DNA of 64,000 nucleotides from Andalucia godoyi And28 (GCA_009859145.1 VRVR01000031.1:1-64000); one strand, 5' to 3'. Counted from the first letter of the stretch, positions 31,401 to 49,336 are shown. Notes: a model not told the origin generated them from the letters alone. Numbers and translations: made by a program.

Positions 31401-34400
31401 AATTGAAGACGGGGCATCCCACAGGTCCAGAAGATTCATCGAGGACAGTCGTTTCTTCTGCCCACGGGACATCGAGGAAGTGCAAGATGTTGAGCCTGTC
31501 GCTGGCGAACTCCTCAATTTCGCTCGTTGTACCGAGACCCACACCTACTTGTTTTAATAAAAGAACCTGAACAGCGCGCAGATATCGGCAGTTCCCACTG
31601 GACCATGAGTTATGGACATCATTCAAGAGCCTTACCATGGCACTTCCGTTATCATTCAGCTCATTCAAGTGCACGTCGGCAACGTTCTTCAGAACCACGT
31701 ATACGCACGCCACGGCAGATGCAAGCAGAAGCTTCGAACCACAGTTGGCAGGGTCACGAAGAATCGCAAATGACCGCGCTGCAGCTCGCAGCCAGAGATT
31801 CTGATCGTCGTCGAAGTCAATGCCGACCTCGTCATCCGCAAGCACGTCGATCAACCGATCCACAACAGCGATGAAAAGTGGAGAGTCATAGAATGGCTTT
31901 TGTGCCGGAATGCGATTGAGTGCACGGGATAGTATACCCAGCCGAGAACCAGATCGGGTAAGTTCTGCATCGGCGAAACAACCAGCGGTTACAGCATCAA
32001 GGACTGATGTAACGCTAATCTTCTGAGCAATGTACTTGAGACATGGGATCACAAAAGGTACGAAGCATTCGCGGTCAGCTTCTTCAAGAAATTGCGCAAG
32101 TGAAGGCAACATCTTACCATTGCGGATAAAACGGTTCAAGAACATGACGTAATCTTCCAGCAAGGCGGTGTCTTGCCTGCCAGTAACATCCTGCAACAAG
32201 CTCATGGCAGTCTCCCAGAATGCTTCATCGTCGTCATCCAAAACAGAAAACGCAAGTATGACAAGATCGTTGCGCTCGAGAGACGGATTACGATGGAAGA
32301 GCGTGGCCAGCTCACGCAGGATGCGAACCGACGGCAAAAGTTTCCTATAGCCAGAGCGCTGCAGCAGGATGGTGACCTCGGTGAGATCTTGCAGCCACAT
32401 TTCGATATGAAAATCGGCAGCGTCGCGTTCCAGTTGCGCATCGTCCGAAGGACGAATTGCGGCAGTCAGCGCTGCAAGAAACTGATCATCAAAGGACACC
32501 TCAGCATCAAAGTCTGTCATCGAATCCGAAATCTCGGAGCGGAGTTTGGGGGATGAAAATGAGGACATTAATCGTAGGCGCATGTCAATCTGCCCGCAGT
32601 TTTCAACGTACAAGCGAATGGCAGTCGGTAACTCGCAGTCGCTATCGATGTGCACATCCTGCAGTACCCGTCTGACAATCACGCGATGTGCCTCCAGTTG
32701 CTGTGCGGACTGGGCGACGCCGCACAACGTGCTCAGATACGTCACAAAGTCCTCGAACAGCGCGAGTGCAGAATCGGAGCCAGCAATCAAGTGTTCGGGA
32801 ACGACGATGCTGGCTCCCAGTTCCTCGAATAGCCAATCAGCGATTTGAGAATCAGCAAGCGCATTGTCCTTTGCGTGGCTCTCAAACTCGACACGCGCCT
32901 GAGAAAACTTTGCGAACAAGACATGGGCAAACGGGAACCGATACGAACCGAGACGCGGGACATGTTTTCGATTCACCATCTGAGCATCAACGCGACCATT
33001 TCCAAGAAAGGGCTTCTGAATGAGAGGAAAGAGGACATGCGCACAAGTCCGGTCCAATATTCCGGCAAGCGAAGCAGGTAGAGCATCGTCGACATCGGAA
33101 GTGACAACCTCCATCATCGCCATATCCTCGAGGGCCTTGATGGCCAACACCATCGGCCACAGAAGATGTTTGCGGATAGTTTCCGCTCCTGTTTCTAACA
33201 GAGAGCCATTCATGAACATCTGCCCAGTTGCCCGAGCCAAGTCAGAAAACCAAGTGGCTGACTTGGCAGTCTGCGCCTTTTCGACAAAGTGGCGAGAACA
33301 GCGAATCAAGATTTTGCAAAACTGGGAAGAAGCTCTTGCACGACGACAGTGATCACTCATTATTTGTGACGGCACCTGAGCGTCTTCGGCAACTACCAGG
33401 TTTAGCGCTCGAGGAAGCGAAGCATACACGCGTTCTTCCAAAGTCGCATCGTCGGTCAGAATGATGTCGCGGATTGCCCGCTGCATCCACGGCATCAAGT
33501 CAGACGGCTGGTCTGTAGATGCAGTGCGGTGGAAGTGCAAGTGTTCCCATCCCGCGATGAAGACAGTGCGAAGCTCTCTGGACGACTCTTCCATATGGCA
33601 AGGCGCTCTGTGGCAGAGAACAACAACTCGCTTGCGGAGATGCGTACCGTGCTGTGCAGTCTCCCACTGTGACAGCATGTCTTCCAGAAGATTTAAAACA
33701 TTGAGGAAATGCTCAGCTTGATCAGTAGCGTGCATTCGTACGACGTATACAGTCTCGTGGATGGACCGCAGGAAATCTTGGAAGTTCTGGGCAAGTTCGA
33801 ACTCGGCCTTTACACCCGAGAGCATGATCACGTGCGCAGACTGTGGCATCACTTCAGACATGCTTGAGAACTGATCGAGGAAGCAGTGCGCAACCGCTAG
33901 TTTCGGCCTACTATCGTCGAGCAAGAATTCCTGTAAACTAGTGGGAAAGCAGTGATCTGCAACAAAGTGCAAATGGTTCGCGACTTGTTCTTGTGATTGT
34001 TGAGCCAGTTTCGAGTAGCGCATTCGGGCAACACCATCAAGAGTCATCAAACGGAGCATGGATTCCTTGCACGCCTCCATGAGAGCATGACCACTATGAA
34101 TGGAGTGCATCAAGAAGACAAGAGAGGGTACCGTCTCCGTGGGATCGTATCCCACAAAAGTAGAAGAAGCATCATGACCATCTGCGTCCGAAACGGAATC
34201 CACCCATCGACGAACTGTATCGCAAATGTTCTTCAGATCGTTCGAGGATTGCAGCACATCGGCAAATGACGCATTCTGCTTCTCGAAACGATTCAAAAAC
34301 GGTGGATCTGCGTTGCGTACGTCCTCCTGGTCCATGAGGACAACGCACTTAAAGCCATCAGCAACCGTGCAGACTGGATTGGAGAAAGCTCCGATGGCGA

Positions 34401-37400
34401 CACGGCAACTGCGACGCCCGCCGACAATGACGTAGTGTTGGTTCAGAACATCGTACAGTGAAGAGTAGATGCCGTCGTGCTTCCGTAACACCAGCACACG
34501 GCCTTGTTCCATACAAAGAATGATACGACTCAACACTTGGTACCGGTAATCGTCGCACTGATCTCCGGGCCACAGACTGCCCCGAAGAATGAGTGGATTT
34601 CGTTGATTGGAAGTTTGGATCACCGATTTGAGGATGGAAAGCGACGAATCAGATGACGTGATCATCATCAGATGCCGGGATAGCGAATCTTCCAGATTGC
34701 TTTTAATCAAATGCATGACGTCATGTGTTCGAAAATCGAATGCGAAAACAGACGAAGAGAACTTGTGGCGGAACTGATCAATAATCGACGGGCTGGCTGA
34801 AGGCATACCGGAAAAATTGCGCTGCACCGCTAATACGAATTCACGACTCACCTGGCCGGTCAACACAATATTACGATGCATAGCCTTGCAGAGCGAATAA
34901 AAATCACGCAGCCCGTGAAAGTTCTCTCGTAGCTGGTTTTTGTAGTAATGATTGTAGGCATCCGCCAAGTTGGGAACAATATCGTTGATTTGGTGCATGT
35001 GAACCGACGATGCGCCGATCAGCACCCGTGCGGTAACTTGCAAATCCCCCACCGACAGATCGGGCCGGGACAAATGGACCGCGCGGTTCATCTTGGCGGC
35101 ATCGAGTCCCCAGTTGGACACGCCAACGACGGCCACTTCGGGCATCTCTCCGGTACTGGGTTCTAGCAAATTGTGGAGGACCTTGAGCGGATTGTGAACG
35201 GAAATCTCAGCCAGCCCGACCTCATCGAGGACGACGACAGAAATCACAGAGTTGGCCCCGAACTTGCGTTGATAGTCAACTGCCTTGTCAAAAACCTTCT
35301 TGATGCCTTCCGATGTGGATGATTCGCTCCCTTGGTACGAGACAAACTGCAGCTGCGGAAACTTCTTGAAATATGAATGACTGGAATCCTTTCCCCTTAC
35401 GGACTGCTGGATTAAGGAGAGAGACAGTGACTTGCTGCATCCGGGTTTTCCAACGACAAACAGCGGAATCTTGTTAAGGATGCAGACAAGCATCACAAAC
35501 ACGTTCTCAATGAGTGCGGCGTTGGGGGCGACCTCCTGATCCAGCACCATCATAGACAAGTACGACAGGCCTTCGATGTGGATGATGTTCTGAAACAGAG
35601 TACCGTCAACCAACGACGCAATTTCTGATTTGTTCATGACCGCAACAATTGTGTCCGCAAACAGTTTGCGAGCCTCCACAGTGGGAAGCCGAGCATGATA
35701 TGCGTGTCCGAGAGCTAGCACAGTCGCCCGTAGCCAATTTGGAACATTACTCACACGATAGAAATGATGATAGTCATACCCCGTCATGAGAGCGCCGGAG
35801 CGAAGCAGCGGCACGAGATGTTCTGAAAAGAATTCTAAGAGAAGAAGGAACCTATTAACATCTCGGAGGCTGACTGCAGCATCTGCCTCCACCGCCTTGA
35901 CAAACCTTTGCGCCCTAATCACAAGTTGAACCACGAGATGGTTGCGATTGTCTTGGAGAAAGTCTGCGTTCTTCATAGCTTCCGAGTCAGCAATCTTCTT
36001 GAGCACCATAGCTTCAATGTAGCGCTCTTCCTCGACATCATCTAATCGGCCGAAATCCCACACATATTCCATCATTGTTTCCGGTAGTGGATGCACGCGG
36101 TACACAAGCTCCGTCGACTTGTCACGACGCTGCGCAAATTCTGGTCTTTCAAGACGCTTGATCCGGATATTTAGGCCAGCGGACACTGCTTCGCCGACTC
36201 GACGTCGATACGGGTTGCAGGCGCACAACAACGAGACAGGCGGCAAGATTGCCCGATCTCGGATCCTACGATGGCAAACGACATCGTTGAGCAGGCCGAG
36301 ATGGACGGATGTGTTGATTTCATCGAAAAACAGCCACACTGGTACCCCTCTTTCTATCGATATCTTCTCCGCGTTAAGAACTTGGTCTTCGATATCTGCC
36401 GCCGATATTCCAGCGTGGACAAGAAAAACGATGAACTCGACAGCGGATACCAATGCCAAGTAGCGGATGAGACTTGTCTTTCCGCAGCCTGTCTCTCCCA
36501 TCAGAACGACTGGCACGTTTGCCTGAATCCTTGCACTGATTAGCATCATCTTGACAAAATTGTCCAGCGTCAGTGCGTATTTTCCGTCATCAGGCTGGAC
36601 AAGACGTGGATTCTTGCAACAAATTTCAATCAGGCGAGTTCGCAGCTCCGTTGCAGTGGCATTGGCAAGCGCATTTGCATTTGCACCCTGTGCCTTTAAC
36701 AGCTCCACAAGTCCCTGCGGCATTGTTTCCTGCCGTCGCGCAACTATCGAGACTACGCTCGTGTTGGAGTTGTGGAAAAGGATGAGCAGTTGGTCTGTTT
36801 CCTCCCATTTCTTCATGCCGTTGAACCGGGCGTCGGCGACAGACATCGACCCATGTTGCTGTCGCTGCACAGCCCGGAGCGTCTTCGTGTTACGCTGCGC
36901 AAGCCCGCGGCACATTTTGACCATGAAAGCGACCAGGTCGCTACGCGCGGTAGTTGCACCGCGAGAAGACGCTTTGATTGTACTCACTTTCCAGAAGACA
37001 CTCGTGGACATTTTGCGTAGCTGCACGGCGAGAGTGTTGACGAAAACGCGCACTGTCGCGAAGGTGAAATCGTGATGTTCACCTTCGACAAGATATCTGC
37101 GTAAAAGAGCGCGACATTCGTCAGCAGACAAGGCAATGGCGGCTTTGGGACCGGAAAACAACACGTCGACGGTGTTCAAGGTGTCGGCGCTGAGAGCGTG
37201 AAGGTATGCACACACTACTTGTGTAGGGTTCAGCACATAATTGGAAACCTGCAGACGGTCCCACTGAAGAGTGGGAATTTCCAGGCTCCCAAGCATGCTC
37301 AAAAGCGGAAGGTCCTGCAGTTGCTTCTCATGGGTATTCGAAATCTCGACGTAAACGTATGGGAATGGGCAGAAAAGGGGGCGAATGTCGGAATCAGAAA

Positions 37401-40400
37401 GAAGACACCGAGAAACCAAGATCTGGTAGAGAAACTGATGTACCTGTGCAACATTCTCCACGTGGTGAATGACAACATGCAATGCAACTTGCTGAGGGCC
37501 CGCTGCCATAGAGACAGCACGAGCAAGAGAACGCATCACATCTTCTTTGCTGACCAGCGCTCCCAGAGCGATTGACACCAGCCGCAACTCACGACTGGTT
37601 GCGTCAATAGCTATGACTTCAGACTTTCCGAGTGCCGGCAGATCGCTCTTGACTACCAGGGTCGAGACGTTGTCTGCCGTTGCCATTGCCCCAGACAGAG
37701 CTCTCTTGATCGCAACACTTGTGAGTCTTGGAGGAACAAAGGCTACTTCGAGTTTGAGACTGATCATCACGCTCTGTGCAGAAGTTCCGCATATGATTCC
37801 CAACGTGAACGGCTTGACCATCTGCGTGACAACTGCAGTACTCTGCAATCGGATTTGGTCCAGCGCAAAATTAAGCAGCTGCAATTGAAGGACGTGCGGA
37901 AGAACGAGAAGATACGTGGCAGGCTTTGAGGGGTTGCGAAGGTTGTCCGAAAAGCATCTGCGTAGGAAAAGTAATAGCTCCTCGAATCGCGTCTGCGGCA
38001 TGCAAAACAGAATGTTGGCCGTAGGCAGGGGCCGAAACTCTTTCCGTTCATGAGAATATTGTACTTCAATTAGAGTTGAAACCAAAGTTTCTGGAGTCCG
38101 CGCCTCTATGACCTGGATACCAGTGAAAGAAATGGGAGTCTCCCTTTGCTGTCTTCCTGTAATACCGTGCAGCACACGCTGGTAGAGCATCTGCATCATC
38201 TCCGACACAGATGCAATGCGCTTGCAACAGTGTTCGCGGAAACGATCACGTGTCAACAAGTCTTGTACATCGAGTTGAACGGTTTCGAACCGTGGAAGAC
38301 CATCGACATGGAAGGCCACATCGGTAGGAACCGGACACATGAATGCCATAATCGACCGAACGAGATTCACGTCATCTTGCTCGCATCGGTCCGAGAAGAA
38401 CCGTTCGATGACATTATAGAGGCTGGGATGCACAAAACTGAGAAGGTGATGAGCGTCACTGCAGAGAGCATCCTGCACAGCTGAGGACCATTCTTCCATG
38501 GTCTGACTGCATATGTCCTTGGCCTGGAGTAAACTGTCATGCTGGCCATCGCCAAACGAAATCATTGGTTCGATGCATCTCAGTGCCTGTTCCAGCGGGC
38601 CGCCAAATGCAGAAAGGCGGTTCAGATTGCGCACAATCTCCTGCATCGCACCGACGACTTGAATGAATCGCTGCATAGCACCGAAAGTTGCGCCCGCATT
38701 CGCACCGGGGCTGGCAAGCGCCTCAATCTCCGCCGCTTGTTGATGCGAATTGACTAACAATAATGCCCGACTGCATAAATCTGACAGTTCTTCTGATTTC
38801 AGCCGGAATTGCGGTCCTTCGGCGTCGTACGACACGACATGTGTTGTGTCGTCTGCTACAAGACGTAGTCTGCCGTGTTTGACACAGTCCAAGACAATGG
38901 TCCTGGTCGCCTCCGCACGGTTTGCAACGCCGGTGTAGATGCGCAAAAGTCCGTGAGCATGCAGTCGACACTGGTCCAGCTTGGCGACAATGTTTAGCAG
39001 AATATTGCCGGCGGAGTCCAGCAGTGGAAACAGCAGCCGGAAGAATGAGTCGGCGTTCCGAAGAGCTCCAGTGTTGAAGTCTGTCGAGAAATTGAGAAAG
39101 AACTCGTGGATCTCCACCGCATCAGCAATGGTCTGCGCTCGGAGAAACTGGTCAGCATGTTGGTCTACACTATCAATCAGATTTCGGGGATTACTGTTTT
39201 CGCGTTGGAAACGGAAGCACAACTGCAGAAGATCTGAGCTGAGAGCCATCTTCTCCAACAGCAGCCACCCAGGAAGACTCTCCAAGGAGTTCAGGCTGTC
39301 GAGACAAAATCCTGAAGACCACGCTCGCACTCGATGGAGAAGAATCAGAGTTTCATCAAGCGCGGTGCAGTAAGTCTCGAGTGACGTATCTTTGGATTCA
39401 ATGACGCCAATCATTCTCAAAATGTGCTGGAAAGTTGACCCAGCAAAAACCGTGTCTTCACTATGTAAGACTTCTTGAACAATGTCACGTAGTGATCGAC
39501 AGCGGCAATCCACGAGGTCGACAGACAAAACGGCTTTCAGAGCATCAACGAATCGAACTTGATCCGGCTTTTTCACAAACGATTTGTTAAAGCATTCGTG
39601 ATTCAACTTCGCCAACGATTCGTACGCTGTATTCAATGCATCTACAGAATTGATTCCTTTCAAAATCTCACGCAGAAATGCAAGTTTGGCAGATCTGATC
39701 GTTTCTGTTTTAAAGAAGCACTGAATAGCGGATTCGAACTCTTTCAAAGTCGGGCAGATCACATCCTCCAACACCGTCGCACACGATCGAGGCGCATCCT
39801 GCTGCAGAGGCGCAGTCTGTCGATCGCCGACATATCGCAGATAATTCTGAAAAATGCGAGTGGAGTAGAGTTGGCGGAAGGTATCACAATACGACAGGAA
39901 TCCATCATGGCATTTGTCGAAATGCGGAGAATCAACCATTTTCAGTGGAAGGTCGTCCATCTCCTTTTGCATACGATCAATGTCCTGCACGTACACTAGC
40001 GCATCCTGAGCGTCTTGTTGTCGACAGTACTCGTACATGGAACGAAGGGCGGAGACCTGATCGCAAAATCGATTCAGAGTGGCATCCAACTCGAGCATAA
40101 CATGTTGTGGGTCCCTCTTGGCAAAACCAGCAAGTCCGAACAAAACAATAGCGTTGGACGATTCAGTCTTGGCAAATGCAGAAAGACAGCGGATGTCGCG
40201 GGCGACAACGGTCATGTGTTTCATGGAATCGCCGATGGTGCGGAAGGCACTCAGCACCGGCATGAGCCAGTTTACACGAGCACGCAACGCATCCAGCAGC
40301 AACGGATTGTTATAGAGAACAAGCATGCATTCATAAAATCCGGAAATCCGAAAGAGATCGACAGCACTGTTCACACTGGCAGACGCGTGGACTACCGTCG

Positions 40401-42873
40401 CAAACGTCATTACGCAAGCACAGACAGTCAGAAGTGCGTCTCGCAGTCGCGGTTCATTCGCGGGATCGAATCCTCGAATATCTGCTGCAGAACTTGCACA
40501 AAAGGAAAAGATCGCTTCAAGCGCTTCGCGAATCGTTATTGTAGTGTTGGAGATGCTTGTGGTGATGCAGTGGCATGCAACGTCCGAGACAAAATTGTCA
40601 AAAGAAGACGGTTGTAAAGAACTGTTTGCTGGCTTCGCATTGCCCAGGGAGCGCAACAGGGCATACGTCTTCGGTTGGAGCTGCTCAACTACAATATCCA
40701 TCGCTATTTCACGAATGCGATCACGCGCTACAAATGGGTCATAGTTGTCGGCAACGTCAATCAACATCTCCCAATAGTTCGCCTTCGGATCCGCGAAACG
40801 GAACTCCAGGTCAACTCTCAGCAGGTGCAACAGCATAGGGAGCATCTTGGCGCTGTTCAATTCATGCGATAGAAAGCCCATGAACAGTGGACGCAAGTCC
40901 GTCACCGTTGCGAGTTTTCCTCCGACAGCACGTACCAGTGACTCAGTAAGAACCGGCCGACACCCTTGGAAAACGATGTGAACGCATGCATCAAATGCGT
41001 TCACTGGAACACGACGGTGTTGAAAATCACGACAGTGTGCTTGAAAAACGATTTCAAATCGGTCACAAATTTCCTTAAGCAGCGGATTATCGCTTTGTGC
41101 AGCCTGCACCGCCGCAGCCCACACTCCCTCAATCATCCCGTCCAACCGACGGATAATGTCCACTCGGCGTTGGAAGAATTTGACCGCATGTCTGCTTGGA
41201 AAAGTCAGTCCAGTAGAAGCCAGTGCAGAGAGGAACTGCATCATTTCATCGACGGACGTGGCGCCAAACGCCAGCAGCGAAATGACGCAATCACAAAGCT
41301 GAATAGGAGAGTTCTTGATATTCTTCAGTAGGTTGACGACAGATTCTGAGGAAAACTGCTGATAGTTTGGGACGCTGCCCAGTGCGGGGGGTGGAAGGGT
41401 TGAATTCACAGCGAAATCCGCAATCCGTTCTAGTACGCTCAGATCAACACGCATTCGCAGCATGGCAAGAACAACATTTGCGAAGAAGGAAAGAGATGCT
41501 TTGCTTCCCCGCAATGAACTTTCAAAGAATGTGCAAAACATGCGTTGCAGTGTCGTTGATTTTGAAAGGTCAGTATCGGCAGAACTGGCGATGACCCATT
41601 TAACCACTGGCGATGTCTCTGCTTCGGAAGTGGGAGGAAACCATCCAGGCGTCTTGTGCAACAGCGGTCCTGTAATCGAGAGGTAGAGATAGAATCCACA
41701 CACCCCGGCCAACGCACTCGTGTCACTTGCACCTGCGACTTCGTTAAGGAGAGTAGACTGAGCTTTCAGAAATTCATTGTCACGAGAATACCCACCACTC
41801 ACCTTCCACCTACGAGTCAAAGCGCGCACAAACTCGTCCATGCTCACAATGCATTGAGGAAATTGGCGATAGCAGATCGCAGAAACAAAATATCGTAGGT
41901 AAAGAGATGAAGCGATGACAAACCGGTCTGCAGTCTGGTCCAACAGAAATTTGTCACGGCGCATTCCAATTGCAATGGAGGTCGTTCCGTCGCTTATAGA
42001 CAATGAGCGATTATGGTTAGATTCCCCTTCCCAACACTTTCTCTTACCATACAACTTGCCCGATTCCTCCCAATAGAACGTGAAACTTGCCACTCTCAAT
42101 GTAGGGTCTACATGAAGGGTGCCATGAAGAAGAGAATATCCCCAATCTGTCGCAATACACGACATCTCTACAGATGGCCATTCTTTGCGGTTGCGAGTGT
42201 CAGGGTCGTAGCAACACCGCACTTCCAAAACGTCGGAATACTCTGAATCATCTAGCAAAAGATAAACGTCAATTTTCAGGAAATCTGCACTCAGAACATT
42301 CGTTGCGAATGAAGATGAGATGTGGGGATCCGGGTAGGCACTTGTCAAACGTACAGATGGATTCGCCTCGTTCCCATCTCGATAACCAGCAGCAACATCT
42401 GGCTTCATCGTATCTCGTGGCAGAGAATTCTCAGTGCTCCGCATCGGCGATTGCGTTGTTGCCCCCGAGTTGACAACACTGGCAAACGAGGCCGTTGAAG
42501 GAAGCGAGACGTGCGACGATCCATGAACATCACGATGAGTTGGACCAGGAGACATTGAACGGTATGACGAGCGAGAGGATGCGGAATCGTTCCCTTTGGA
42601 ACCTGACAAATCCGACTCATTCGAAAAGGGTCCTGAGCCACCTTTCTGTCGATTGACTCCGTCCCCATGAGAAGTCGCAGCTTTTAACGGAGCTTCATCA
42701 ACGGCAGACGAAGGTTCACGTACATCGTAGGACGGACTCATAGAAAACGACGTGTATGCTGCACCATGGCTGCGGGAAGAACCGACAGCAGATGACGGAC
42801 CCGCAGGAACCGATGACATGGAGTTGGGTGCATCAGCCTTTCTTCCTTTTCCAGATTTATTGTTCTTGCTCAT
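28426..42873 (-). CDS. RNF213/mysterin-like giant dynein-type AAA+ ATPase with an RZ finger (~4,815 aa, single ORF)
   Basis: VVLMGETGCGKT / LFFDEINT / ACNPYRRR / YRVHPLP...VWDFG. FVVGKPGCSKS / VLDEVGLAE / NPLKVLH / SNWGLDAAKMNR / HGLRDFY. RZ-like CNC...DCG...CPICGEPIG at about 30751-30843. CBM20-like WEGESNHNRSL near 42020. Start placed at MSKNNK (42873). Confidence 0.92.
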   Translation of the reverse strand: MSKNNKSGKGRKADAPNSMSSVPAGPSSAVGSSRSHGAAYTSFSMSPSYDVREPSSAVDEAPLKAATSHGDGVNRQKGGSGPFSNESDLSGSKGNDSASSRSSYRSMSPGPTHRDVHGSSHVSLPSTASFASVVNSGATTQSPMRSTENSLPRDTMKPDVAAGYRDGNEANPSVRLTSAYPDPHISSSFATNVLSADFLKIDVYLLLDDSEYSDVLEVRCCYDPDTRNRKEWPSVEMSCIATDWGYSLLHGTLHVDPTLRVASFTFYWEESGKLYGKRKCWEGESNHNRSLSISDGTTSIAIGMRRDKFLLDQTADRFVIASSLYLRYFVSAICYRQFPQCIVSMDEFVRALTRRWKVSGGYSRDNEFLKAQSTLLNEVAGASDTSALAGVCGFYLYLSITGPLLHKTPGWFPPTSEAETSPVVKWVIASSADTDLSKSTTLQRMFCTFFESSLRGSKASLSFFANVVLAMLRMRVDLSVLERIADFAVNSTLPPPALGSVPNYQQFSSESVVNLLKNIKNSPIQLCDCVISLLAFGATSVDEMMQFLSALASTGLTFPSRHAVKFFQRRVDIIRRLDGMIEGVWAAAVQAAQSDNPLLKEICDRFEIVFQAHCRDFQHRRVPVNAFDACVHIVFQGCRPVLTESLVRAVGGKLATVTDLRPLFMGFLSHELNSAKMLPMLLHLLRVDLEFRFADPKANYWEMLIDVADNYDPFVARDRIREIAMDIVVEQLQPKTYALLRSLGNAKPANSSLQPSSFDNFVSDVACHCITTSISNTTITIREALEAIFSFCASSAADIRGFDPANEPRLRDALLTVCACVMTFATVVHASASVNSAVDLFRISGFYECMLVLYNNPLLLDALRARVNWLMPVLSAFRTIGDSMKHMTVVARDIRCLSAFAKTESSNAIVLFGLAGFAKRDPQHVMLELDATLNRFCDQVSALRSMYEYCRQQDAQDALVYVQDIDRMQKEMDDLPLKMVDSPHFDKCHDGFLSYCDTFRQLYSTRIFQNYLRYVGDRQTAPLQQDAPRSCATVLEDVICPTLKEFESAIQCFFKTETIRSAKLAFLREILKGINSVDALNTAYESLAKLNHECFNKSFVKKPDQVRFVDALKAVLSVDLVDCRCRSLRDIVQEVLHSEDTVFAGSTFQHILRMIGVIESKDTSLETYCTALDETLILLHRVRAWSSGFCLDSLNSLESLPGWLLLEKMALSSDLLQLCFRFQRENSNPRNLIDSVDQHADQFLRAQTIADAVEIHEFFLNFSTDFNTGALRNADSFFRLLFPLLDSAGNILLNIVAKLDQCRLHAHGLLRIYTGVANRAEATRTIVLDCVKHGRLRLVADDTTHVVSYDAEGPQFRLKSEELSDLCSRALLLVNSHQQAAEIEALASPGANAGATFGAMQRFIQVVGAMQEIVRNLNRLSAFGGPLEQALRCIEPMISFGDGQHDSLLQAKDICSQTMEEWSSAVQDALCSDAHHLLSFVHPSLYNVIERFFSDRCEQDDVNLVRSIMAFMCPVPTDVAFHVDGLPRFETVQLDVQDLLTRDRFREHCCKRIASVSEMMQMLYQRVLHGITGRQQRETPISFTGIQVIEARTPETLVSTLIEVQYSHERKEFRPLPTANILFCMPQTRFEELLLFLRRCFSDNLRNPSKPATYLLVLPHVLQLQLLNFALDQIRLQSTAVVTQMVKPFTLGIICGTSAQSVMISLKLEVAFVPPRLTSVAIKRALSGAMATADNVSTLVVKSDLPALGKSEVIAIDATSRELRLVSIALGALVSKEDVMRSLARAVSMAAGPQQVALHVVIHHVENVAQVHQFLYQILVSRCLLSDSDIRPLFCPFPYVYVEISNTHEKQLQDLPLLSMLGSLEIPTLQWDRLQVSNYVLNPTQVVCAYLHALSADTLNTVDVLFSGPKAAIALSADECRALLRRYLVEGEHHDFTFATVRVFVNTLAVQLRKMSTSVFWKVSTIKASSRGATTARSDLVAFMVKMCRGLAQRNTKTLRAVQRQQHGSMSVADARFNGMKKWEETDQLLILFHNSNTSVVSIVARRQETMPQGLVELLKAQGANANALANATATELRTRLIEICCKNPRLVQPDDGKYALTLDNFVKMMLISARIQANVPVVLMGETGCGKTSLIRYLALVSAVEFIVFLVHAGISAADIEDQVLNAEKISIERGVPVWLFFDEINTSVHLGLLNDVVCHRRIRDRAILPPVSLLCACNPYRRRVGEAVSAGLNIRIKRLERPEFAQRRDKSTELVYRVHPLPETMMEYVWDFGRLDDVEEERYIEAMVLKKIADSEAMKNADFLQDNRNHLVVQLVIRAQRFVKAVEADAAVSLRDVNRFLLLLEFFSEHLVPLLRSGALMTGYDYHHFYRVSNVPNWLRATVLALGHAYHARLPTVEARKLFADTIVAVMNKSEIASLVDGTLFQNIIHIEGLSYLSMMVLDQEVAPNAALIENVFVMLVCILNKIPLFVVGKPGCSKSLSLSLIQQSVRGKDSSHSYFKKFPQLQFVSYQGSESSTSEGIKKVFDKAVDYQRKFGANSVISVVVLDEVGLAEISVHNPLKVLHNLLEPSTGEMPEVAVVGVSNWGLDAAKMNRAVHLSRPDLSVGDLQVTARVLIGASSVHMHQINDIVPNLADAYNHYYKNQLRENFHGLRDFYSLCKAMHRNIVLTGQVSREFVLAVQRNFSGMPSASPSIIDQFRHKFSSSVFAFDFRTHDVMHLIKSNLEDSLSRHLMMITSSDSSLSILKSVIQTSNQRNPLILRGSLWPGDQCDDYRYQVLSRIILCMEQGRVLVLRKHDGIYSSLYDVLNQHYVIVGGRRSCRVAIGAFSNPVCTVADGFKCVVLMDQEDVRNADPPFLNRFEKQNASFADVLQSSNDLKNICDTVRRWVDSVSDADGHDASSTFVGYDPTETVPSLVFLMHSIHSGHALMEACKESMLRLMTLDGVARMRYSKLAQQSQEQVANHLHFVADHCFPTSLQEFLLDDSRPKLAVAHCFLDQFSSMSEVMPQSAHVIMLSGVKAEFELAQNFQDFLRSIHETVYVVRMHATDQAEHFLNVLNLLEDMLSQWETAQHGTHLRKRVVVLCHRAPCHMEESSRELRTVFIAGWEHLHFHRTASTDQPSDLMPWMQRAIRDIILTDDATLEERVYASLPRALNLVVAEDAQVPSQIMSDHCRRARASSQFCKILIRCSRHFVEKAQTAKSATWFSDLARATGQMFMNGSLLETGAETIRKHLLWPMVLAIKALEDMAMMEVVTSDVDDALPASLAGILDRTCAHVLFPLIQKPFLGNGRVDAQMVNRKHVPRLGSYRFPFAHVLFAKFSQARVEFESHAKDNALADSQIADWLFEELGASIVVPEHLIAGSDSALALFEDFVTYLSTLCGVAQSAQQLEAHRVIVRRVLQDVHIDSDCELPTAIRLYVENCGQIDMRLRLMSSFSSPKLRSEISDSMTDFDAEVSFDDQFLAALTAAIRPSDDAQLERDAADFHIEMWLQDLTEVTILLQRSGYRKLLPSVRILRELATLFHRNPSLERNDLVILAFSVLDDDDEAFWETAMSLLQDVTGRQDTALLEDYVMFLNRFIRNGKMLPSLAQFLEEADRECFVPFVIPCLKYIAQKISVTSVLDAVTAGCFADAELTRSGSRLGILSRALNRIPAQKPFYDSPLFIAVVDRLIDVLADDEVGIDFDDDQNLWLRAAARSFAILRDPANCGSKLLLASAVACVYVVLKNVADVHLNELNDNGSAMVRLLNDVHNSWSSGNCRYLRAVQVLLLKQVGVGLGTTSEIEEFASDRLNILHFLDVPWAEETTVLDESSGPVGCPVFNSLPGVTDAFSTFLDYLSTRSIARIPDLLHPDRVRATFLFLAGTWSIGQVWPTVQQEMDMFVTEVRRLLNEDVGLRNALDPSYRKALSYIVDCKYPRVVGFDWLAVVSGQVPENGTSFVFSSQVASLIFRLAADLFEPGLQSLFACLARGQISSAVLADLFLPTAAENDEIVAVLAQLSKETDRVTRYRCNCGGLYFVYDCGNQVETGTCPICGEPIGAVNGYGTVRNGVTRIDAAPLTRDNAAAILGKEAIKPGYVNIDPTKLFKFDAVRGMNAIQFRVIRLLLHMSMCIPTLLLDRPVVTLGVAVPLESLCAHIASDMQVLPELLNLSPANTCVFVHSAIRQLLSTAETIPCTLLKRAAERDRLEMLLSQELTTLMADGSAQGAVGDFEAASRMAITDRAFESRLPLEIAECNHNDIADVDYRADMWPAVWRLRDSPSDEAVQSSFMNVTGCRERYPVLNLLFTKCEKLETISALQPVLEFARAVSSIVHQKTSRRVTKAMTFNQLLADHPQLRGQFYEFANAWKEAAPLVRRFQCIARVPVPPEITIDSTIAFAVFDDRDEGIVLTAVIQALADLQNDVLRQLQEIDPPVGRFLTSLPRLSLEDGGGKFPVVPLAKINTTDHIIHCDGFEHVAVVCREWSHQGLEYGAGRLTTYEWEVAEDVSGASLLSNKAIIDVSDLTKVQYSDEIFGGSQNVVRAVQRKIKQEPLTITEVALVKEEFTKKCMVPATLIETFATVFATILRVNPDPSVMLRDFAKDILVANRDHFFQTSHVALISVSKIVSLFELIEDTIGLSLVDNNPAVRDDLPEDARLSATEFFTSRLTPAQQQMLKSGMCRTAVRYLSTDPCPIPPTMPLSYVFASETFQIFLPGDADAGIFSDLPGNLLLRHLAQSFALLDEVIEQQGAVALHESETSMSAAFSSLSLDPNPESSSSVGSGNNHPTPGSSASASFSHTPGIPRAGPPMGKPKVQTKPKTVRREVLDDFDDMA

Positions 42874-43733
42874 TTTTCGTTTTACCAAGTTAGAAACCAA
42901 GATCAAAGTGAAATGCGAAAGAAAATAGGGAGAAACAACAGGAAGCGGAGGAAGGAGACCGAAGAGAGAACTGTGTGAGAGACTATGAGGCACTGTGAGC
43001 TCGTGCAAGTGAGAGGTCGGCACTCAGTAACCGGCAGTGCTGACATCCGCGTGAACTTGATGGACGAAACCGGATGTCCGGAATTCTGGAACACCCGGAT
43101 TCTCCATCTCGCATCGTTCCTTCGTTTGCTCCTCCTCTGACCAAGTCGTCCGTGACTCACTTTGCAAGTCACTCAAAGAAAAGGCGCTTCAAATCCGGGC
43201 TCCATCCTGCTCACACGCAAGGCTGAGAACGGACCGACTGCTGAGACGGATGCTATGCGACAGTAACGGAAAGCGCATCTTCGCCCAAAAGCGCTCTTTC
43301 AAGCAGGCAAGCACGACAATCATTCACCCAGTGTGTGATCGGACAACCAGGGATCTGCTCGTCTGTAACTTCTTTATTTTCCCAAACTCCCGCGACGATC
43401 AAACGCGATGGACAAACGAGCAGAATCAAGTTTTCATCTTGCAATCCTTCAATCCCCATCAAGCAATGTTAGAGCAGATCATTTGTTTCATTCATGTGTA
43501 ACGTTACTGTCAACGGCACAACACACAAACTCGAGAAATGGCAGGCAGAAGGGGAGTCGGTGAATCGGAACAAAGGGAGCTTGTTTTCTGGCCCCGCCGA
43601 CTTCTTGCGTGAGACAACATTCACTTCAATTTATTTTTGGCTTTATGTGAGATGCATGTACAGTTCAGTTTTATTATGGAAATTCGTTCATTCTTCTGAA
43701 TTCAATACAAACGCACTTACCACTCTCTGCTGA

Positions 43734-44945
43734 ATGAATAAAATGGCTTCTAGTGTGATGCCGTTCCACTGTGGACATTGCAATCTCAGCTTGACTTCCG
43801 AAGATTTTCCATCATTCGCGATGACGTCCGAGTGCAACCACGACCCGATTTGTTTCATGTGCTTTCACAACCAATCTCGTCACAAATTCGATGATGAAGA
43901 GGAAGAAGATGATGATGACGAGGATGAGGAAGACGACCACGACAATGGCGCTCCTATTGCGTGTCCGATGTGCAAAAAAGCGGTTCATCCGCTCCTGGCA
44001 GCAGCTGCAGACATATATGCGCGTTATCGTGCTGCTGGCGGTCTCCAAACCGGACTGGATATCGGCGTCGCTGCCCACGCACAGAGTGATGATAATATAC
44101 TGTTCCCAGACACGTACGACTTGTATGTATCCACGCTGGACGGCCGGCGCAGCATGTGTTCTGTCACGTCGCTGTGGAAACTGCAAGACTTGTTGGAGTG
44201 GTGTCGGAAGAAGTTCGGTTTTCGCCCCCAACAACAGCGTTTGTACCTAGGAGACCGCGAATTCTCCGGTAAGGACGCGGAGACGTGTACCAAGCTGCTT
44301 GGCGCCGATCTCGGCGTTGGCCCTGATGCAGAGCTGAACCTGGTGTTCGTGTTATTGGAGGTCGGAACGGATGGTGGTGACATCCGCACCGTTGTGTTCG
44401 ATTTGAAATGGGGCTATCCTGCAGCTGGCCGCGACTACTTGGACGGTTCGTGCCTCATTTTCGCTGGCCACGATTTTCGCATCCCTATCGATTTCAATAT
44501 GCAGGTGATTCCGGATGAAGCAGGTCTCGATTACATTTCTCATTCTGGTGACATTATGGACGACTCCAAGAGGCTTGGTCATCATAAAATCCAAGTCAAC
44601 CTACAGGCCACGCCCCGTGATGTGACTGCAATGTTCTTCACGCTCAGTGCCTACAACTCCAGCACTATTGCGAGCTTTCCGACAGCAGCAGTCTCCATGT
44701 TCGACGCTCGGCGCCCAGAGGATCAACTGTGCGAGTACGCAGTATTGAAGGAGGCAGGTGCGCATCAGGGTGTTGTCATGTGTGCCCTCGTGCGTGTTCC
44801 TAGTGCCAGAGCTGATCCGACGCACTCGCCCTGGACGGTGGTGGCGTTGGGCACGGTTTCGAAGGGCAACGCGAAAGACTATGGACCCTTGGTGCAGACA
44901 ATTAATGGTCGGTGTATGCGTACGTGCGAAGCAGCTGCACATTGA
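43734..44945 (+). CDS. RING-HC + ubiquitin-like + TerD-family domain protein
   Basis: RING ligands CGHC, CNH, CFMC, CPMC with an acidic insert. Ubl LYVSTLDG...FGFRPQQQRLYL. TerD-like DLKWG...DYLDGSC, HSGD, HKIQVNL..TP.DV..MFF.LSAY, WTVVALG. Confidence 0.8.
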   Translation: MNKMASSVMPFHCGHCNLSLTSEDFPSFAMTSECNHDPICFMCFHNQSRHKFDDEEEEDDDDEDEEDDHDNGAPIACPMCKKAVHPLLAAAADIYARYRAAGGLQTGLDIGVAAHAQSDDNILFPDTYDLYVSTLDGRRSMCSVTSLWKLQDLLEWCRKKFGFRPQQQRLYLGDREFSGKDAETCTKLLGADLGVGPDAELNLVFVLLEVGTDGGDIRTVVFDLKWGYPAAGRDYLDGSCLIFAGHDFRIPIDFNMQVIPDEAGLDYISHSGDIMDDSKRLGHHKIQVNLQATPRDVTAMFFTLSAYNSSTIASFPTAAVSMFDARRPEDQLCEYAVLKEAGAHQGVVMCALVRVPSARADPTHSPWTVVALGTVSKGNAKDYGPLVQTINGRCMRTCEAAAH

Positions 44946-44996
44946 TCGATCTCTGGGGAAGTGGATAAATAACCGTTTATGACTGTTAAGAAACGT

Positions 44997-46549
44997 CTAT
45001 CCAAAATATTCCACAAAGCACAACCACACTGCGGCATTCGAAATGTAGCGGGCGGTTCCGGCTGTGGACTGGAAATACGCCTGAAACAGCTTAGTGAAGC
45101 CATTGTCGATCAATATGCGTCCGCAGGGAGTCGGACCGTCTAGAACCGCGTCCGCAATTGAGATTAGCGGATGGTCGTCAGTCGAAGTCGCGAGAACTTG
45201 CATTCGTCCCGTTGCATTGGGGTAACAGATTGTATTTCCCTCATACAGCTGCTCAATTCCGGTCAAGATCAGATGCATGCCAAAGAAACCCTTTTGGCGC
45301 GGGTCGCCTCGACGCAGCACTTGCATTCCTGGTGTATTGCCGACGAGTTGTACTGGGGAACCTCCAGTTCCCAAGTCCAGTTTTGCGAGAATGAAATTTG
45401 CGTGCAAAAAGTATGGATCATTGTCACCCCATAACATTACTCCTCGAAGACTCCGACTAAAGTCCACGACAGCTCGAACGAATTCCTCCTTATCAGAAAA
45501 GGGGTCCCGGAATGTGCAATGACTAATGACCCACAGGACGTCATAGTCCACGCGTGCGCCAGGCTGCAAGCTCTGCCGTACCATGCGAGTAAATTCTTTC
45601 TCTGACTCAGTAACCTCAATCTGAAACCCTTTAATCGTCTTCAAGGCATGCACGGCGCATGACCGCAGTTCATCGGGTAACATGTAAGGACAGAAATTGC
45701 CCACAAGTACGCGGAATTCCGAGAATGCACCGTCAGCGCCCAGATCGAACTCCGTGCCTGCGGCGTTTCCAAACGCATCCTTCTGATAGTAAAACTGCTG
45801 CTGTTCCGCTGAAAGTTTGTTGTAGTACGTCACCACGAGAGAAAGCCGCAGATGATCGAGGCCTTGGTTTTGCGCATTTCGAATCACATCTGGGGTAATG
45901 TACTGATCCAGAGTCATCTCTTTGTTGGCTGAAGCCTCCTGTGTATACGACAGCATGAGTATTCAAAACAGGACTTAAAAACAGGAATAGGTACAGAGAA
46001 TGCATACCACAAACTCGGTCTCGCCGAGAAACAGCTTCTGCAGTCGCGGACTCGGATGCTTCGAGTGCATCTTCTGAAGCGCAGATTTTAATTCGAAAAT
46101 AGACGTCTGCGGAGTTGCTGTCAACGAAAACTCGATGCCGCTCACGCACGACACAACAACCATCGACGTAAAGTCTTCTACGGCGATTTCGTTATGGTCG
46201 AATGCTGCACTTGCGCTCAGCTGCTGAACGCAGATGCCTCCATCCCGGAGAGAATGTGTCCAAATGCGCCACTGCTGGAGCTCGCCTTCGGAGAGGGCTC
46301 TGTGGCATGACCGACACGATTTGCAATCATCATCTACTATGCACTGGACATGCAAGGAAAACAAACAGATGTGAACAACATGTGCGTGTGCACAGCAGAT
46401 CTTCTCGCTGTTGCGAATGAGAACAGATAACATACGTTAACGCACAGACCGGCAGGGTGGGTGCATCCGACATGAACCGCACACTCGAACGTCAGATAAG
46501 AGCTTTCCACTCCGCAGCGGAGACACGTCAGTGCACTTCCTGTAAGCAT
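44997..46549 (-). CDS. Three-exon RING-HC + ubiquitin-like + class-I-GATase-like (GIFT/ThuA-like fold) protein, 463 aa
   Basis: Exons 46549-46436, 46343-46008 and 45938-44997 join in phase 0 across GTATGT..CAG (92 bp) and GTATGC..CAG (69 bp) introns. This restores the RING CLRC..CTH..CVN|C..CRSC and the Ubl VSCVSG...QKLFLGETEFV|EASANKEMTLDQY. C-terminal motifs: FDLGADGAF, KGF, YDVLWVIS, WGDNDPY..AN, LYEG.TI, GRILIDNGFTKL, AGTARYISNAAVWL. Confidence 0.78.
45939..46007 (-). other. Spliceosomal intron 2 (69 bp)
   Basis: GTATGC donor and ACAG acceptor; removal joins the two halves of the Ubl in frame and removes a stop. Confidence 0.82.
46344..46435 (-). other. Spliceosomal intron 1 (92 bp)
   Basis: GTATGT donor, pyrimidine tract, TCCAG acceptor; removal reconstitutes a RING Cys pair. 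Confidence 0.8.
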
Positions 46550-47038: not shown

Positions 47039-49336
47039 ATGGTTTCGTTTAACAAATGCCCTGCCGCCGATGTCTCTACTGGTCTTCACCGCAGCAGCGG
47101 CTCTGTGACATCACTGACGCTACAGCTGTGCAGCGATCTGCGTAAAGGAGTAGATGGGATCTTGTTGCTTGTACCGCGTTTGAGAGAACTGAAAATTTCT
47201 CGGCTTCCTGCAGATGATACCGGGACCACGGACGAAGTGATGGAGGCTGTAGCCAATGCACTACGGCGTGTGCCGCAACTGACACACCTGTCCATTCAAC
47301 AAGTGCGCCTCAGCGACCGCGGAGCGAAGTCTCTCAGCATCCAACTGCAGCAGCTTCCTCGTCTTACGCGCCTCGACTTTTGTCACAACAATATCGGGGA
47401 CGACGGAGTGCGTGCTCTTATGTTAGGAGTGAAGCACTGTCGCAACTGCGTCCATCTCGATTTGCGAGATAACAGGTTCGGTGACCGGGGATTGTTCGAG
47501 CTCTACCGTTTTTGGGCCGAGGGTGGTCAATTCATGAGCTTCAATTCTTCCGGCGACGAAGACGAAGACGAAGTTGGGTCAGACAGCTCCGCTGTGAAGC
47601 TGTGGATGTGTCGTGCTAGAGGTTTTCCAGAAGTCCTGTTCAACACGGCATCCAACAGGAAGGTGTACGATCACGCACATGCTGCGTGGGAGCAACAGCC
47701 GTCTGTTTTCGATGGAAATCAGGGCGTGCAGCAGACTATCATTGCTCTCTCTTCTCAAGTTCCCATTTCCACTCTCCCTGTGCTGTCTGTTGACCACACC
47801 GCAGCGCATCAACTTCATTCCGATATGCGTGAGGAGTTAGCTCAAGAACACATTCGTATGCAGCAGGAATTTGATGCTATGCGGGAAAATATGGCAAAGG
47901 ACTATGAAGACCAGTTGAACGCGATGCGGCAACAACTGGATGTCGAACGCCGCGCCAAGGTCGATCAGCTGACAAACTTTGAAAATTTTGCACAGTCGCT
48001 GATGGAGGAGATTTCATTGATGGGATCGACTTCCAAGTCTGCGTTGCGAGAAGAAACAAGAGTTTTGGCTCAACGGCTCGGCAGTTCGGCCCAGAGCATG
48101 GCCGAACGGATACTTCAACTCGAAGCAGAAGTAATGGGTCGCATTACACAGATGTTTGATGAGCGAACGTCGCAAAGCGAGGACCGGTTTCGGCAGATGC
48201 GTGAGGAGATCGAAGCGCTCCGGCACGAGATCGACTACAGCGTGCTGGTTCGTGAGAACAGGGGTGAGAGCGGATCAGTCGCAGTGCCAGAGATTCGGCT
48301 TCAGGACTTGGAGAACGCAACCGACGCGGTTCGGGACGGAATGCCTGCTAGCTGGGCGCAGCTTGGCTCTGGTGCGTTTGGCCGAGTGTTCAAGACGACA
48401 TGGACAAAGCCCGGTGGTCGCAAAGTGGACGTGGCCGTGAAAGTACCTCTGTCTCCTGATAACTTGTCGAAAGCTGAACGAGACAGAATCACCCGGGAAG
48501 TGCGGATTTTGGCGGAAGTACGACATCGGAACATTGTTGCGTTACATGGCTTCTTACCAAAGCGCGGGTGGATTGTCACGGAGCTCATGGGACTCGATCT
48601 TGGAAACGGTGCCACCATTCCGTGCCTCTGGCAATTCTTCAATCGGATGACGCGCTGCCATTTGGACATTCCTGTGGCCTGGCGGTTGCAATGGGCGCAT
48701 CAGATAGCGGAAGGTATGCGCAAACTTGCGGCGACGTCTATTCTCCATCGTGATCTGAAGAGCAGCAATGTCTTGCTTCGACGTGATGTAGACTGCCCTT
48801 CCGAGGAGTTTCAAGTGTTTCAGGAGTGCCTTCTCCAGAGCGAAAGCGATGATGCGAATGCCAAGGAGCTTTCAGAAAAGCTTGCTAGTCTGTGCTGCCC
48901 GGCTCTAGCCAAGGTATCCGACTTCGGCGAGGCACGATTGTCCTCGTTACAGACCCTCAATACGGAGGGAGCACTGCACGGCCCAGTAGGAACGTGCGCC
49001 TGGGTTGCGCCCGAGATCTGGCAACGCACAATCTCTCCATCTGAAAAATCCGATGTGTTTTCATTCGGCATGATGCTTGTTGAACTGTGTCACCCGGAAT
49101 GGGGCCACCCCTGGTACACCATTTGTGAACATGATGCGGAGCGGATGAAAAGGCTTGTGTGTGATGGTCGTCGTCCACCCGTTACACAGGATGCAGTGAA
49201 TCGCATGCCTCCTGGTTTCGGAGCGCTCATGTCCGAGTGTTGGGACGCGAACCCGGATTTGCGACCGTCGTTTTCTGGAATTGCGGACAGGCTTCAGGAG
49301 ATGCGCCGACAGTCTCTTCTCAGAGAGAACTTGTGA
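47039..49336 (+). CDS. RI-like LRR + coiled coil + TKL protein kinase; an upstream exon is possible
   Basis: 28-residue LRRs (LTRLDFCHNNIGDDGVRAL, VHLDLRDNRFGDRG). Long heptad region. LGSGAFGRV, VAVK, HRDLKSSNVLL, DFG, GTCAWVAPE, DVFSFG, CWDANPDLRPSF. Confidence 0.9.
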   Translation: MVSFNKCPAADVSTGLHRSSGSVTSLTLQLCSDLRKGVDGILLLVPRLRELKISRLPADDTGTTDEVMEAVANALRRVPQLTHLSIQQVRLSDRGAKSLSIQLQQLPRLTRLDFCHNNIGDDGVRALMLGVKHCRNCVHLDLRDNRFGDRGLFELYRFWAEGGQFMSFNSSGDEDEDEVGSDSSAVKLWMCRARGFPEVLFNTASNRKVYDHAHAAWEQQPSVFDGNQGVQQTIIALSSQVPISTLPVLSVDHTAAHQLHSDMREELAQEHIRMQQEFDAMRENMAKDYEDQLNAMRQQLDVERRAKVDQLTNFENFAQSLMEEISLMGSTSKSALREETRVLAQRLGSSAQSMAERILQLEAEVMGRITQMFDERTSQSEDRFRQMREEIEALRHEIDYSVLVRENRGESGSVAVPEIRLQDLENATDAVRDGMPASWAQLGSGAFGRVFKTTWTKPGGRKVDVAVKVPLSPDNLSKAERDRITREVRILAEVRHRNIVALHGFLPKRGWIVTELMGLDLGNGATIPCLWQFFNRMTRCHLDIPVAWRLQWAHQIAEGMRKLAATSILHRDLKSSNVLLRRDVDCPSEEFQVFQECLLQSESDDANAKELSEKLASLCCPALAKVSDFGEARLSSLQTLNTEGALHGPVGTCAWVAPEIWQRTISPSEKSDVFSFGMMLVELCHPEWGHPWYTICEHDAERMKRLVCDGRRPPVTQDAVNRMPPGFGALMSECWDANPDLRPSFSGIADRLQEMRRQSLLRENL

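Follow-up and report, generated by a model that had tools for sequence, protein, structure and literature searches.

A convergent pair of predicted RING-Ubl genes with TerD-like and amidotransferase-like tails in the jakobid Andalucia godoyi

Positions 43734-46549 of a 64,000-nt window from the jakobid Andalucia godoyi (the window being the whole stretch of DNA that was analyzed) hold a convergent gene pair, A on the plus strand and B on the minus strand, through which we define a conserved RING-Ubl family of microbial eukaryotes. Both products are predicted to begin with a RING finger followed by a ubiquitin-like (Ubl) domain, and they end either in a bacterial-type TerD domain (gene A) or in an uncatalogued domain resembling class I glutamine amidotransferases (GATases) in fold (gene B), for which we use the working name X (the C-terminal ~260 residues of gene B). 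With moderate confidence, we read A and B as a functionally coupled RING-Ubl ligase or adaptor pair with calcium- or ligand-sensing tails, a function that we infer from what the domains are and where else they occur. They are most likely a pair because TerD and X are fused to each other elsewhere and because the two genes carry the same RING-Ubl module.

Results

Structure of the gene pair

The two genes and the parts of gene B are laid out as follows.

43734-44945, plus strand: gene A, RING-Ubl-TerD, a single-exon coding sequence of 403 amino acids (aa) in an uninterrupted open reading frame (ORF)
44946-44996, no strand: spacer between the convergent stop codons of A and B, 51 nt, read from the sequence
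44997-46549, minus strand: gene B as a whole, three exons, 463 aa after splicing
46436-46549, minus strand: gene B exon 1, 114 nt, aa 1-38
46344-46435, minus strand: gene B intron 1, 92 nt, GT..AG, phase 0, splitting C-V-N from C between RING ligands 5 and 6
46008-46343, minus strand: gene B exon 2, 336 nt, aa 39-150
45939-46007, minus strand: gene B intron 2, 69 nt, GT..AG, phase 0, splitting EFV from EAS inside the Ubl
44997-45938, minus strand: gene B exon 3, 942 nt, aa 151-463 plus the stop codon

The gene A product is identical to a 403-aa protein in the protein collection, P0019. For the minus-strand gene, the first-pass annotation of this DNA had proposed two phase-0 GT-AG introns and a gap of only 51 bp between the stop codons. 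The introns agree with the existing annotation, since the spliced gene B product matches EukProt ANDGO_08350.mRNA.1 with 100% identity over 100% of the length, and the gap was confirmed directly from the sequence. Both introns open with GTATG and close with CAG. The minus-strand gene was also considered as a pseudogene or a set of mis-assembled ORFs, which was ruled out by the identity of the spliced model with the annotation and by intron positions that are kept in another phylum. An exact-protein look-up of gene B in assemblies for transcript evidence returned no record, and no further copies of the two genes were found within the window. The 3′ untranslated regions of A and B putatively overlap.

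Comparison of the RING-Ubl modules

A RING-HC finger followed by a Ubl domain had been claimed for both genes, and this layout was borne out in each, with the Ubl recognized by fold in gene A and by profile in gene B.

43770-43973, plus strand: gene A RING, aa 13-80, ligands C13,C16 / C34,H36 / C40,C43 / C77,C80
43887-43940, plus strand: Asp/Glu-rich insert in gene A, aa 52-69, second RING loop, read from the sequence
44106-44372, plus strand: gene A Ubl domain, aa 125-213, from Pfam and Foldseek
46305-46525, minus strand: gene B RING, aa 9-51, split by intron 1, ligands C9,C12 / C29,H31 / C36,C39 / C45,C48
45900-46163, minus strand: gene B Ubl, profile-supported core aa 99-163, split by intron 2, from a leave-one-out profile

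When 8 members drawn from both families were aligned, none of the eight zinc ligands (C-C-C-H-C-C-C-C) varied; the proposed common spacing Cx2C...CxHx3-4Cx2C...Cx2C was confirmed, and the RING pattern C-x2-C-x(9-39)-C-x(1-3)-H-x(2-3)-C-x2-C-x(4-48)-C-x2-C served as the standard of comparison. The H-to-C spacing is 3 in gene A and 4 in gene B and P0017, the latter exceeding the classical range by one. When the family RING profile was compared with the PDB, the top matches were nearly all RING E3s, namely, RNF4 (3.6e-4), RING2/BMI1, BRCA1 (6.9e-4), TRIM31/32, RNF8, and COP1, and the C-P-M-C-K-K of gene A resembles the C-P-T-C-R-K of RNF4. By pattern and profile, we accept the zinc module as a probable C3HC4 RING with a predicted ligase activity. 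The 18 residues of the gene A insert are nearly all Asp/Glu and were modeled with a low predicted local distance difference test score (pLDDT); no aligned homolog has such an insert. Two relatives retain Ubl and X with a degraded front: P0165 (L007 10001-11209) has lost several zinc ligands, and P0170 has lost the entire RING.

In gene B, the RING becomes whole only after splicing, because exon 2 opens with the codon for its sixth ligand. The whole gene B protein gave no match against Pfam and PDB sequences. A RING profile made without gene B scored 15.5 bits on its aa 8-62 (E=7e-7 for a single target), and a family Ubl profile made in the same way scored 20.4 bits on aa 99-163 (E=2e-8). As for gene A, its match to Pfam ubiquitin is sub-threshold (E=0.0058), and the same Pfam model matches 6 of the 7 gene A family members, at best with E=3.6e-13; the AlphaFold model of gene A superimposes on ubiquitin chains with template modeling (TM) scores of 0.8-0.87 in Foldseek.

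The two modules are related along their whole length. With BLASTP, gene A aligns to gene B in the Ubl region alone (E=0.003). Comparison of the N-terminal halves with hhalign joined the two families at 98.4-99.2% probability over ~150 collinear columns spanning the RING, the linker, and the Ubl, and the highest probability among 30 column-shuffled control comparisons was 1.2%. A KLSxEFP motif ahead of the third zinc ligand is present in both families; P0126 (MLCQKCRVLKLHDEFP...) and P0165 are examples among the RING-Ubl-X proteins. The introns tell the same story: the RING-Ubl-X gene of Paratrimastix pyriformis has a phase-0 intron between C-L-R and C (L004 10100-10147), the RING-Ubl-TerD gene of Cetraspora pellucida has one between C-L-K and C (L003 4914-4975), and these two and intron 1 of gene B occupy one alignment column, between ligands 5 and 6. 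Intron 2 of gene B shares its column with the second P. pyriformis intron (between EIT and NQV, phase 0), so that both splice sites predicted for gene B have phase-0 counterparts in that gene.

Because the hhalign relationship, the KLSxEFP motif, and the position of the RING intron are all shared, both families descend from one ancestral RING-Ubl gene module, and the intron position is evidence for this that is independent of sequence similarity. Given the module shared between the families, introns were lost from gene A. The duplicated RING-Ubl chassis of the first-pass annotation, which had called for an alignment of the two halves, is thus upheld by profile comparison and by the RING intron. 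The front halves of A and B are 19% identical, and identities among all RING-Ubl modules lie at 17-30%, which indicates that the split of the modules is old. As both architectures also occur in other eukaryotes, and given the 19% identity, the A/B duplication is probably ancient and not local. An origin of the pair by recent tandem duplication was considered and is unsupported, given the 17-30% identities across all modules. A neighbor-joining tree of the RING-Ubl modules pairs A with B, with no support values and on long branches. The shared RING intron is a clean marker of an old module that has been recombined with different tails.

The TerD tail of gene A

44379-44927, plus strand: gene A TerD domain, aa 216-398, from Pfam and Foldseek

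The C-terminal domain of gene A is a TerD domain by both sequence and fold. Its score against Pfam TerD (PF02342) is 25.4 bits, marginally over the cut-off of 25.3, and the same model matches all 7 gene A family members, at best with 2e-11. In Foldseek, the gene A model matched the TerD structures 3ibz (E=5.6e-9, TM 0.73), 2qng (TM 0.79), and 2qz7 (TM 0.71-0.75). The TerD-like ending that had been proposed for this gene therefore stands, just above the Pfam cut-off and with fold TM scores of 0.71-0.79. The motifs D-x-LD-x-S and HSGD are invariant across the TerD family of gene A, and we take them to be the calcium sites of TerD, with reference to the Klebsiella TerD structure.

The X domain of gene B

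45006-45785, minus strand: gene B class-I-GATase-like domain X, aa 202-461, from the predicted model and Foldseek
45420-45425, minus strand: invariant Asp322-Asn323 at the elbow position, from two X alignments and the predicted model

The predicted model of gene B has a pLDDT of mostly 80-95 over aa ~205-460, and Foldseek matched it to STM3548 (2gk3; E=4e-6), HisH (2.9e-4), and the CTP-synthase glutaminase domain (4.5e-4), with probability 1.0 and target TM about 0.5; GH42 beta-galactosidase and the catalase C-terminal domain were further matches. All of the fold matches listed are of the class I glutamine-amidotransferase-like fold. The LWGDND motif sits where strand 316-320 turns into helix 328-336; X has an invariant G-D-N-D-P and no Cys there, and Asp322-Asn323 would be equivalent in place to the catalytic Cys of class I amidotransferases. 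The Cys-His-Glu catalytic triad was looked for in X and is absent, Asp-Asn being found at the elbow. Because the elbow holds an invariant G-D-N-D-P without Cys, the model suggests that X is GATase-like in fold and not an amidotransferase.

No sequence family claims X. Ten diverse isolated X domains gave zero Pfam matches even at E<=10, NCBIfam gave no match, and PDB sequence searches with a single X sequence and with a profile gave none. The first-pass annotation had described a GATase/GIFT-like domain with D instead of C at the elbow; the GATase-like fold and the Asp without Cys both held. The link to GIFT is unsupported: Pfam gave no match at E<=10, and the 50 best fold matches include neither IFT52 nor GldG. 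On the whole, both predicted C-terminal folds came out as expected, gene A matching TerD and gene B class I GATase-like structures. Pfam ThuA (PF06283), a GATase1-like family, matches 2 of 58 long X proteins, at best with 3.4e-6 and either on X or elsewhere in the protein; it gave no match on the ten isolated X domains.

Recurrence of the architectures and spread of X

A profile search with X covered 1.84 billion representatives and found homologs in 1,423 clusters (at 50% identity) with E<=1e-3, 507 of them with E<=1e-30. X is thus a large family without a Pfam or NCBIfam model. Architectures were counted among the best 150 proteins plus earlier matches, and Pfam fusion partners among the 58 long members. 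RING-Ubl-X recurs in P0017, P0097, P0112, P0126, P0149, and P0165, and ten cases of Ubl-X were found. X-TerD fusions are present in four protein clusters from other protists (P0006, P0009, P0090, and P0133). The most frequent Pfam partners were EF-hands (14), HSP70 (10), WWE (6), and VWA (3), with single fusions each to TROVE, alpha-kinase, and microbial PARG. RING-Ubl-TerD recurs in P0020, P0021, P0022, P0023, and P0025 (given also as the range P0020-P0025) and in P0169. P0112 and P0108 are known on short transcript-like contigs only, and a look-up of the genomic surroundings of P0097 and P0149 returned no record.

Both architectures are therefore present in distant eukaryotes, which agrees with the modular E3/adaptor family that had been postulated for this pair. 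Only TerD and two X subtypes turned up behind RING-Ubl, with no third type of C-terminal domain in a search limited by its word index. The X subtype of gene B is 40-43% identical to the X of X-TerD, Ubl-X, and EF-hand proteins; that of the other RING-Ubl-X proteins is 47-50% identical to bacterial X. A hidden Markov model of TerD built from the X-TerD fusions scores gene A at 40 bits, above the generic Pfam model, and the TerD of these fusions reaches 98 bits against Pfam TerD versus 25 bits for gene A.

Bacterial and archaeal genomes were scanned with a narrower X alignment, which located X at 71 loci, 1 of them in an archaeon and 70 in bacteria (Bacteroidota, Myxococcota, Actinomycetes, Firmicutes, cyanobacteria, and Planctomycetota). 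With TerD being a bacterial family, the C-terminal domains of both genes are of prokaryotic type, as had been supposed. Most bacterial X proteins are ~300 aa long with a clear N-terminal signal peptide (e.g., L009, L013, L020, and L052). In several Bacteroidota metagenome-assembled genomes, X occurs as three tandem paralogs (L018, L020, and L042), a pattern typical of diversifying secreted proteins. Some bacterial X proteins are full HSP70 fusions. At the bacterial locus L001 (5875-22226), the cluster around HSP70-X comprises GrpE, another HSP70, HSP70-VWA, and two genes for DO-GTPases, and it matches the GAP1-N2 DO-GTPase clusters of this type described as a conflict system (Kaur et al. 2020, PMC7159879). 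The L001 cluster adjoins transposase and type IV secretion system-like genes.

Flanking genes

28426-43023, minus strand: RNF213 homolog, 4865 aa, AAA core plus RZ finger, from phmmer and Pfam

Gene A lies head-to-head with this giant gene across a 710-nt divergent spacer (43024-43733). The 4865-aa product matches the human and mouse RNF213 structures in the PDB with E=1.8e-121 (phmmer), and Pfam ZnF_RZ-type scores 36.6 bits on it. Throughout its length it has a single CxxC, at aa 4083 within the RZ finger, so that the neighbor is an RNF213 homolog with no RING. A comparable arrangement is found in P. pyriformis (L004 1-11435), where a 4594-aa giant lies head-to-head with the RING-Ubl-X gene of P0126, ~375 nt apart, and aligns to the Andalucia homolog at 29% over 1581 aa and 36% over 311 aa; the locus compared covers the giant only up to its C-terminal half, the expected place of a RING. 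The contig carrying that locus, JAPMOS010000036.1, is assigned to Paratrimastix pyriformis (PMC10703272). The RNF213 linkage is absent at the three other eukaryotic loci, L002, L003, and L007.

Directly past gene B, at 47039-49336 on the plus strand of the window, lies a gene for a 765-aa protein with an LRR_6 leucine-rich repeat (LRR), a long coiled-coil-like middle, and a kinase of the tyrosine kinase-like (TKL) type. An ORF with RNI-type LRR-like repeats follows P0126 in P. pyriformis. The LRR-kinase gene and the RNF213 homolog give the region an "innate-immunity-like" set of domains, and the neighborhood suggests the RING-Ubl proteins as possible partners of the RING-less RNF213 homolog.

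Discussion

In the mechanism that we propose, the RING would recruit an E2, so that A and B would both act as E3 ligases or ligase adaptors, and the C-terminal TerD and X domains would be their sensing or target-binding ends. RING proteins with paralogous partners are often heterodimers, and A and B may pair in this way, possibly via RING-RING heterodimerization of the kind known from RING1B-BMI1 or BRCA1-BARD1. Together, they would then couple a calcium or small-ligand stress or defense signal to ubiquitylation, and they are probably co-expressed with the divergently oriented RING-less RNF213 homolog. A shared pathway for TerD and X may be proposed because the two are fused in one polypeptide in other protists (a "Rosetta stone" argument), and in support of the pairing of A with B, the X-TerD fusions use the X subtype of gene B and carry a TerD whose profile fits gene A. 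Calcium control is proposed because X is often fused to EF-hands, and the D-x-LD-x-S and HSGD motifs conserved in TerD likewise point to calcium as the signal. The HSP70 fusion inside a DO-GTPase-type conflict cluster may lend X a stress or defense flavor. More broadly, the fusions of X to TerD, EF-hand, HSP70, VWA, WWE, and TROVE link it to calcium-linked stress or conflict pathways, and through this fusion network a large orphan domain gains its first lead to a function.

Several observations weigh against the coupled pair. RING-Ubl-TerD was seen beside RING-Ubl-X in this window only, as none of the five other loci inspected (the eukaryotic L002, L003, L004, and L007 and the bacterial L001) holds both genes. 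No TerD gene was found within 8 kb of X at the 71 prokaryotic loci, and X has no conserved neighbors there, with no neighbor cluster recurring in more than 5 of the 71. On the ligase side, the last ligand pair of gene B reads C-R-S-C versus C-P-x-C in gene A and most relatives, and single sequences reach 9-18 bits against Pfam RING cut-offs of 21-30. The RING and Ubl of gene B were modeled with pLDDT <50, and because the model of that half is poor, both domains are predictions from sequence evidence. The RING is dispensable in some lineages, since P0165 and P0170 have lost ligands or the whole finger. Finally, the polar residues D322, N323, N331, H372, E383, R424, D428, R447, and N451 are strongly conserved in X and could make it an enzyme instead of a sensor.

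These points leave room for other explanations. A and B might be independent, their adjacency a relic or chance, with A a calcium-regulated E3 and B an enzyme that acts through a catalytic X and uses its RING-Ubl part for stability or localization. So many invariant polar residues would suit an enzyme or a binding effector, as would the tandem arrays of secreted bacterial proteins in which X stands by itself. Identity between the front halves of A and B is no higher than 19%, and a side-by-side arrangement of both genes was found in no second genome. We nevertheless hold independence to be unlikely, if deserving of attention, as X-TerD fusions exist in four protein clusters and as the shared RING-Ubl module and the convergent 51-nt spacer suggest more than chance. 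It is very improbable, in our judgment, that the zinc module is a structural or binding treble-clef and not an active E3 RING, which would make the proteins scaffolds or proteasome shuttles via the Ubl. The sub-threshold scores of all Pfam RING models, the loss of ligands in some relatives, and the missing Pro of the C-P-x-C motif in gene B would be accounted for in this way, but the eight ligands are invariant with RING spacing in 8 sequences, almost all of the top PDB matches of the profile are catalytic RING E3s, and C-P-M-C-K-K in gene A is like C-P-T-C-R-K in RNF4.

The giant neighbor invites yet another explanation, in which A and B are trans RING subunits or substrate adaptors of the RING-less RNF213 homolog and form with it an ancient immunity-like ubiquitylation module, TerD and X doing the sensing. 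The homology of the neighbor at E=1.8e-121, its RZ finger, and its lack of a RING would all fit, as would the 710-nt divergent spacer common to gene A and the giant, the head-to-head giant (29% over 1581 aa) ~375 nt from P0126 in P. pyriformis, and the LRR-kinase gene past gene B with its LRR-like counterpart past the P. pyriformis gene. The linkage was found in two genomes only, however, and is missing at L007, L002, and L003; the compared locus covers the P. pyriformis giant only up to its C-terminal half, the place of any RING; and the RING of mammalian RNF213 is reportedly not needed for the ubiquitylation of lipopolysaccharide. We consider this explanation distinctly unlikely. A bolder form of it, more doubtful still, is that the arrangement is an ancestral, three-part split form of RNF213 as an antimicrobial or stress ligase, with A and B as its dedicated partners, the head-to-head gene pair kept in Discoba (Andalucia) and Metamonada (Paratrimastix), RING and sensing supplied in trans, and TerD and X derived from bacterial stress or conflict systems. 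RNF213 is a human disease and innate-immunity ligase, and the RING-less RNF213 neighborhood offers a testable route into its pre-metazoan history. The coupled pair of A and B remains the reading that we prefer.

No description of RING-Ubl-TerD, of RING-Ubl-X, or of the X family was found in open-access text. What is new here is the size of X, its bacterial spread, and its fusions; the RING intron common to both families; and an RNF213 linkage that recurs.

Among known proteins, RING1B and the PCGF proteins (BMI1) of Polycomb repressive complex 1 (PRC1) come closest in architecture; they have a RING at the N terminus, then the ubiquitin-like RAWUL domain, and form obligate RING-RING heterodimers. 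A and B resemble them in having a RING followed by a Ubl fold and paralogous partners, and RING2/BMI1 is among the best profile matches. They differ in that the PRC1 Ubl is a RAWUL, PRC1 members lack any TerD or GATase-like tail, and an A-B heterodimer is hypothetical; Pfam RAWUL gave no match on the family members, whose Ubl fits canonical ubiquitin. In Parkin and UHRF1, too, a single ligase unites RING-type zinc fingers with an internal Ubl that is not conjugatable, but they place the Ubl first, contain RBR or PHD/SRA modules, and have no TerD or X. The neighboring giant shares the AAA core and the RZ finger with RNF213 (mysterin) and differs from it in having no RING.

As for the tails, X has the flavodoxin-like beta-alpha order and the strand-turn-helix at the elbow in common with STM3548/2gk3, HisH, and the CTP-synthase glutaminase domain. 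Unlike class I glutamine amidotransferases, it lacks the Cys-His-Glu triad, has Asp-Asn at the elbow, and reaches a TM of only about 0.5. The GIFT domain (GldG/IFT52) is also regarded as a GATase-like fold without the catalytic Cys, but X matches neither Pfam ABC_transp_aux nor related models at E<=10. The C terminus of gene A is akin to the bacterial TerD family, which serves in tellurite resistance and stress (Streptomyces 3ibz and 2qz7; SCP2), in sequence (marginally), fold, and motifs, whereas it stands behind RING-Ubl in a eukaryote and belongs to a divergent subfamily (25 bits to Pfam). Neither gene A nor gene B matched NCBIfam NF041916, the bacterial MXAN_6230/SCO0854 family RING domain-containing protein, at E<=0.01. 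Region 572-663 of that model weakly matches aa 283-373 in the TerD part of P0006 (E=3.7e-5), and because the family is named for a RING, the combination of RING and TerD may already exist in bacteria.

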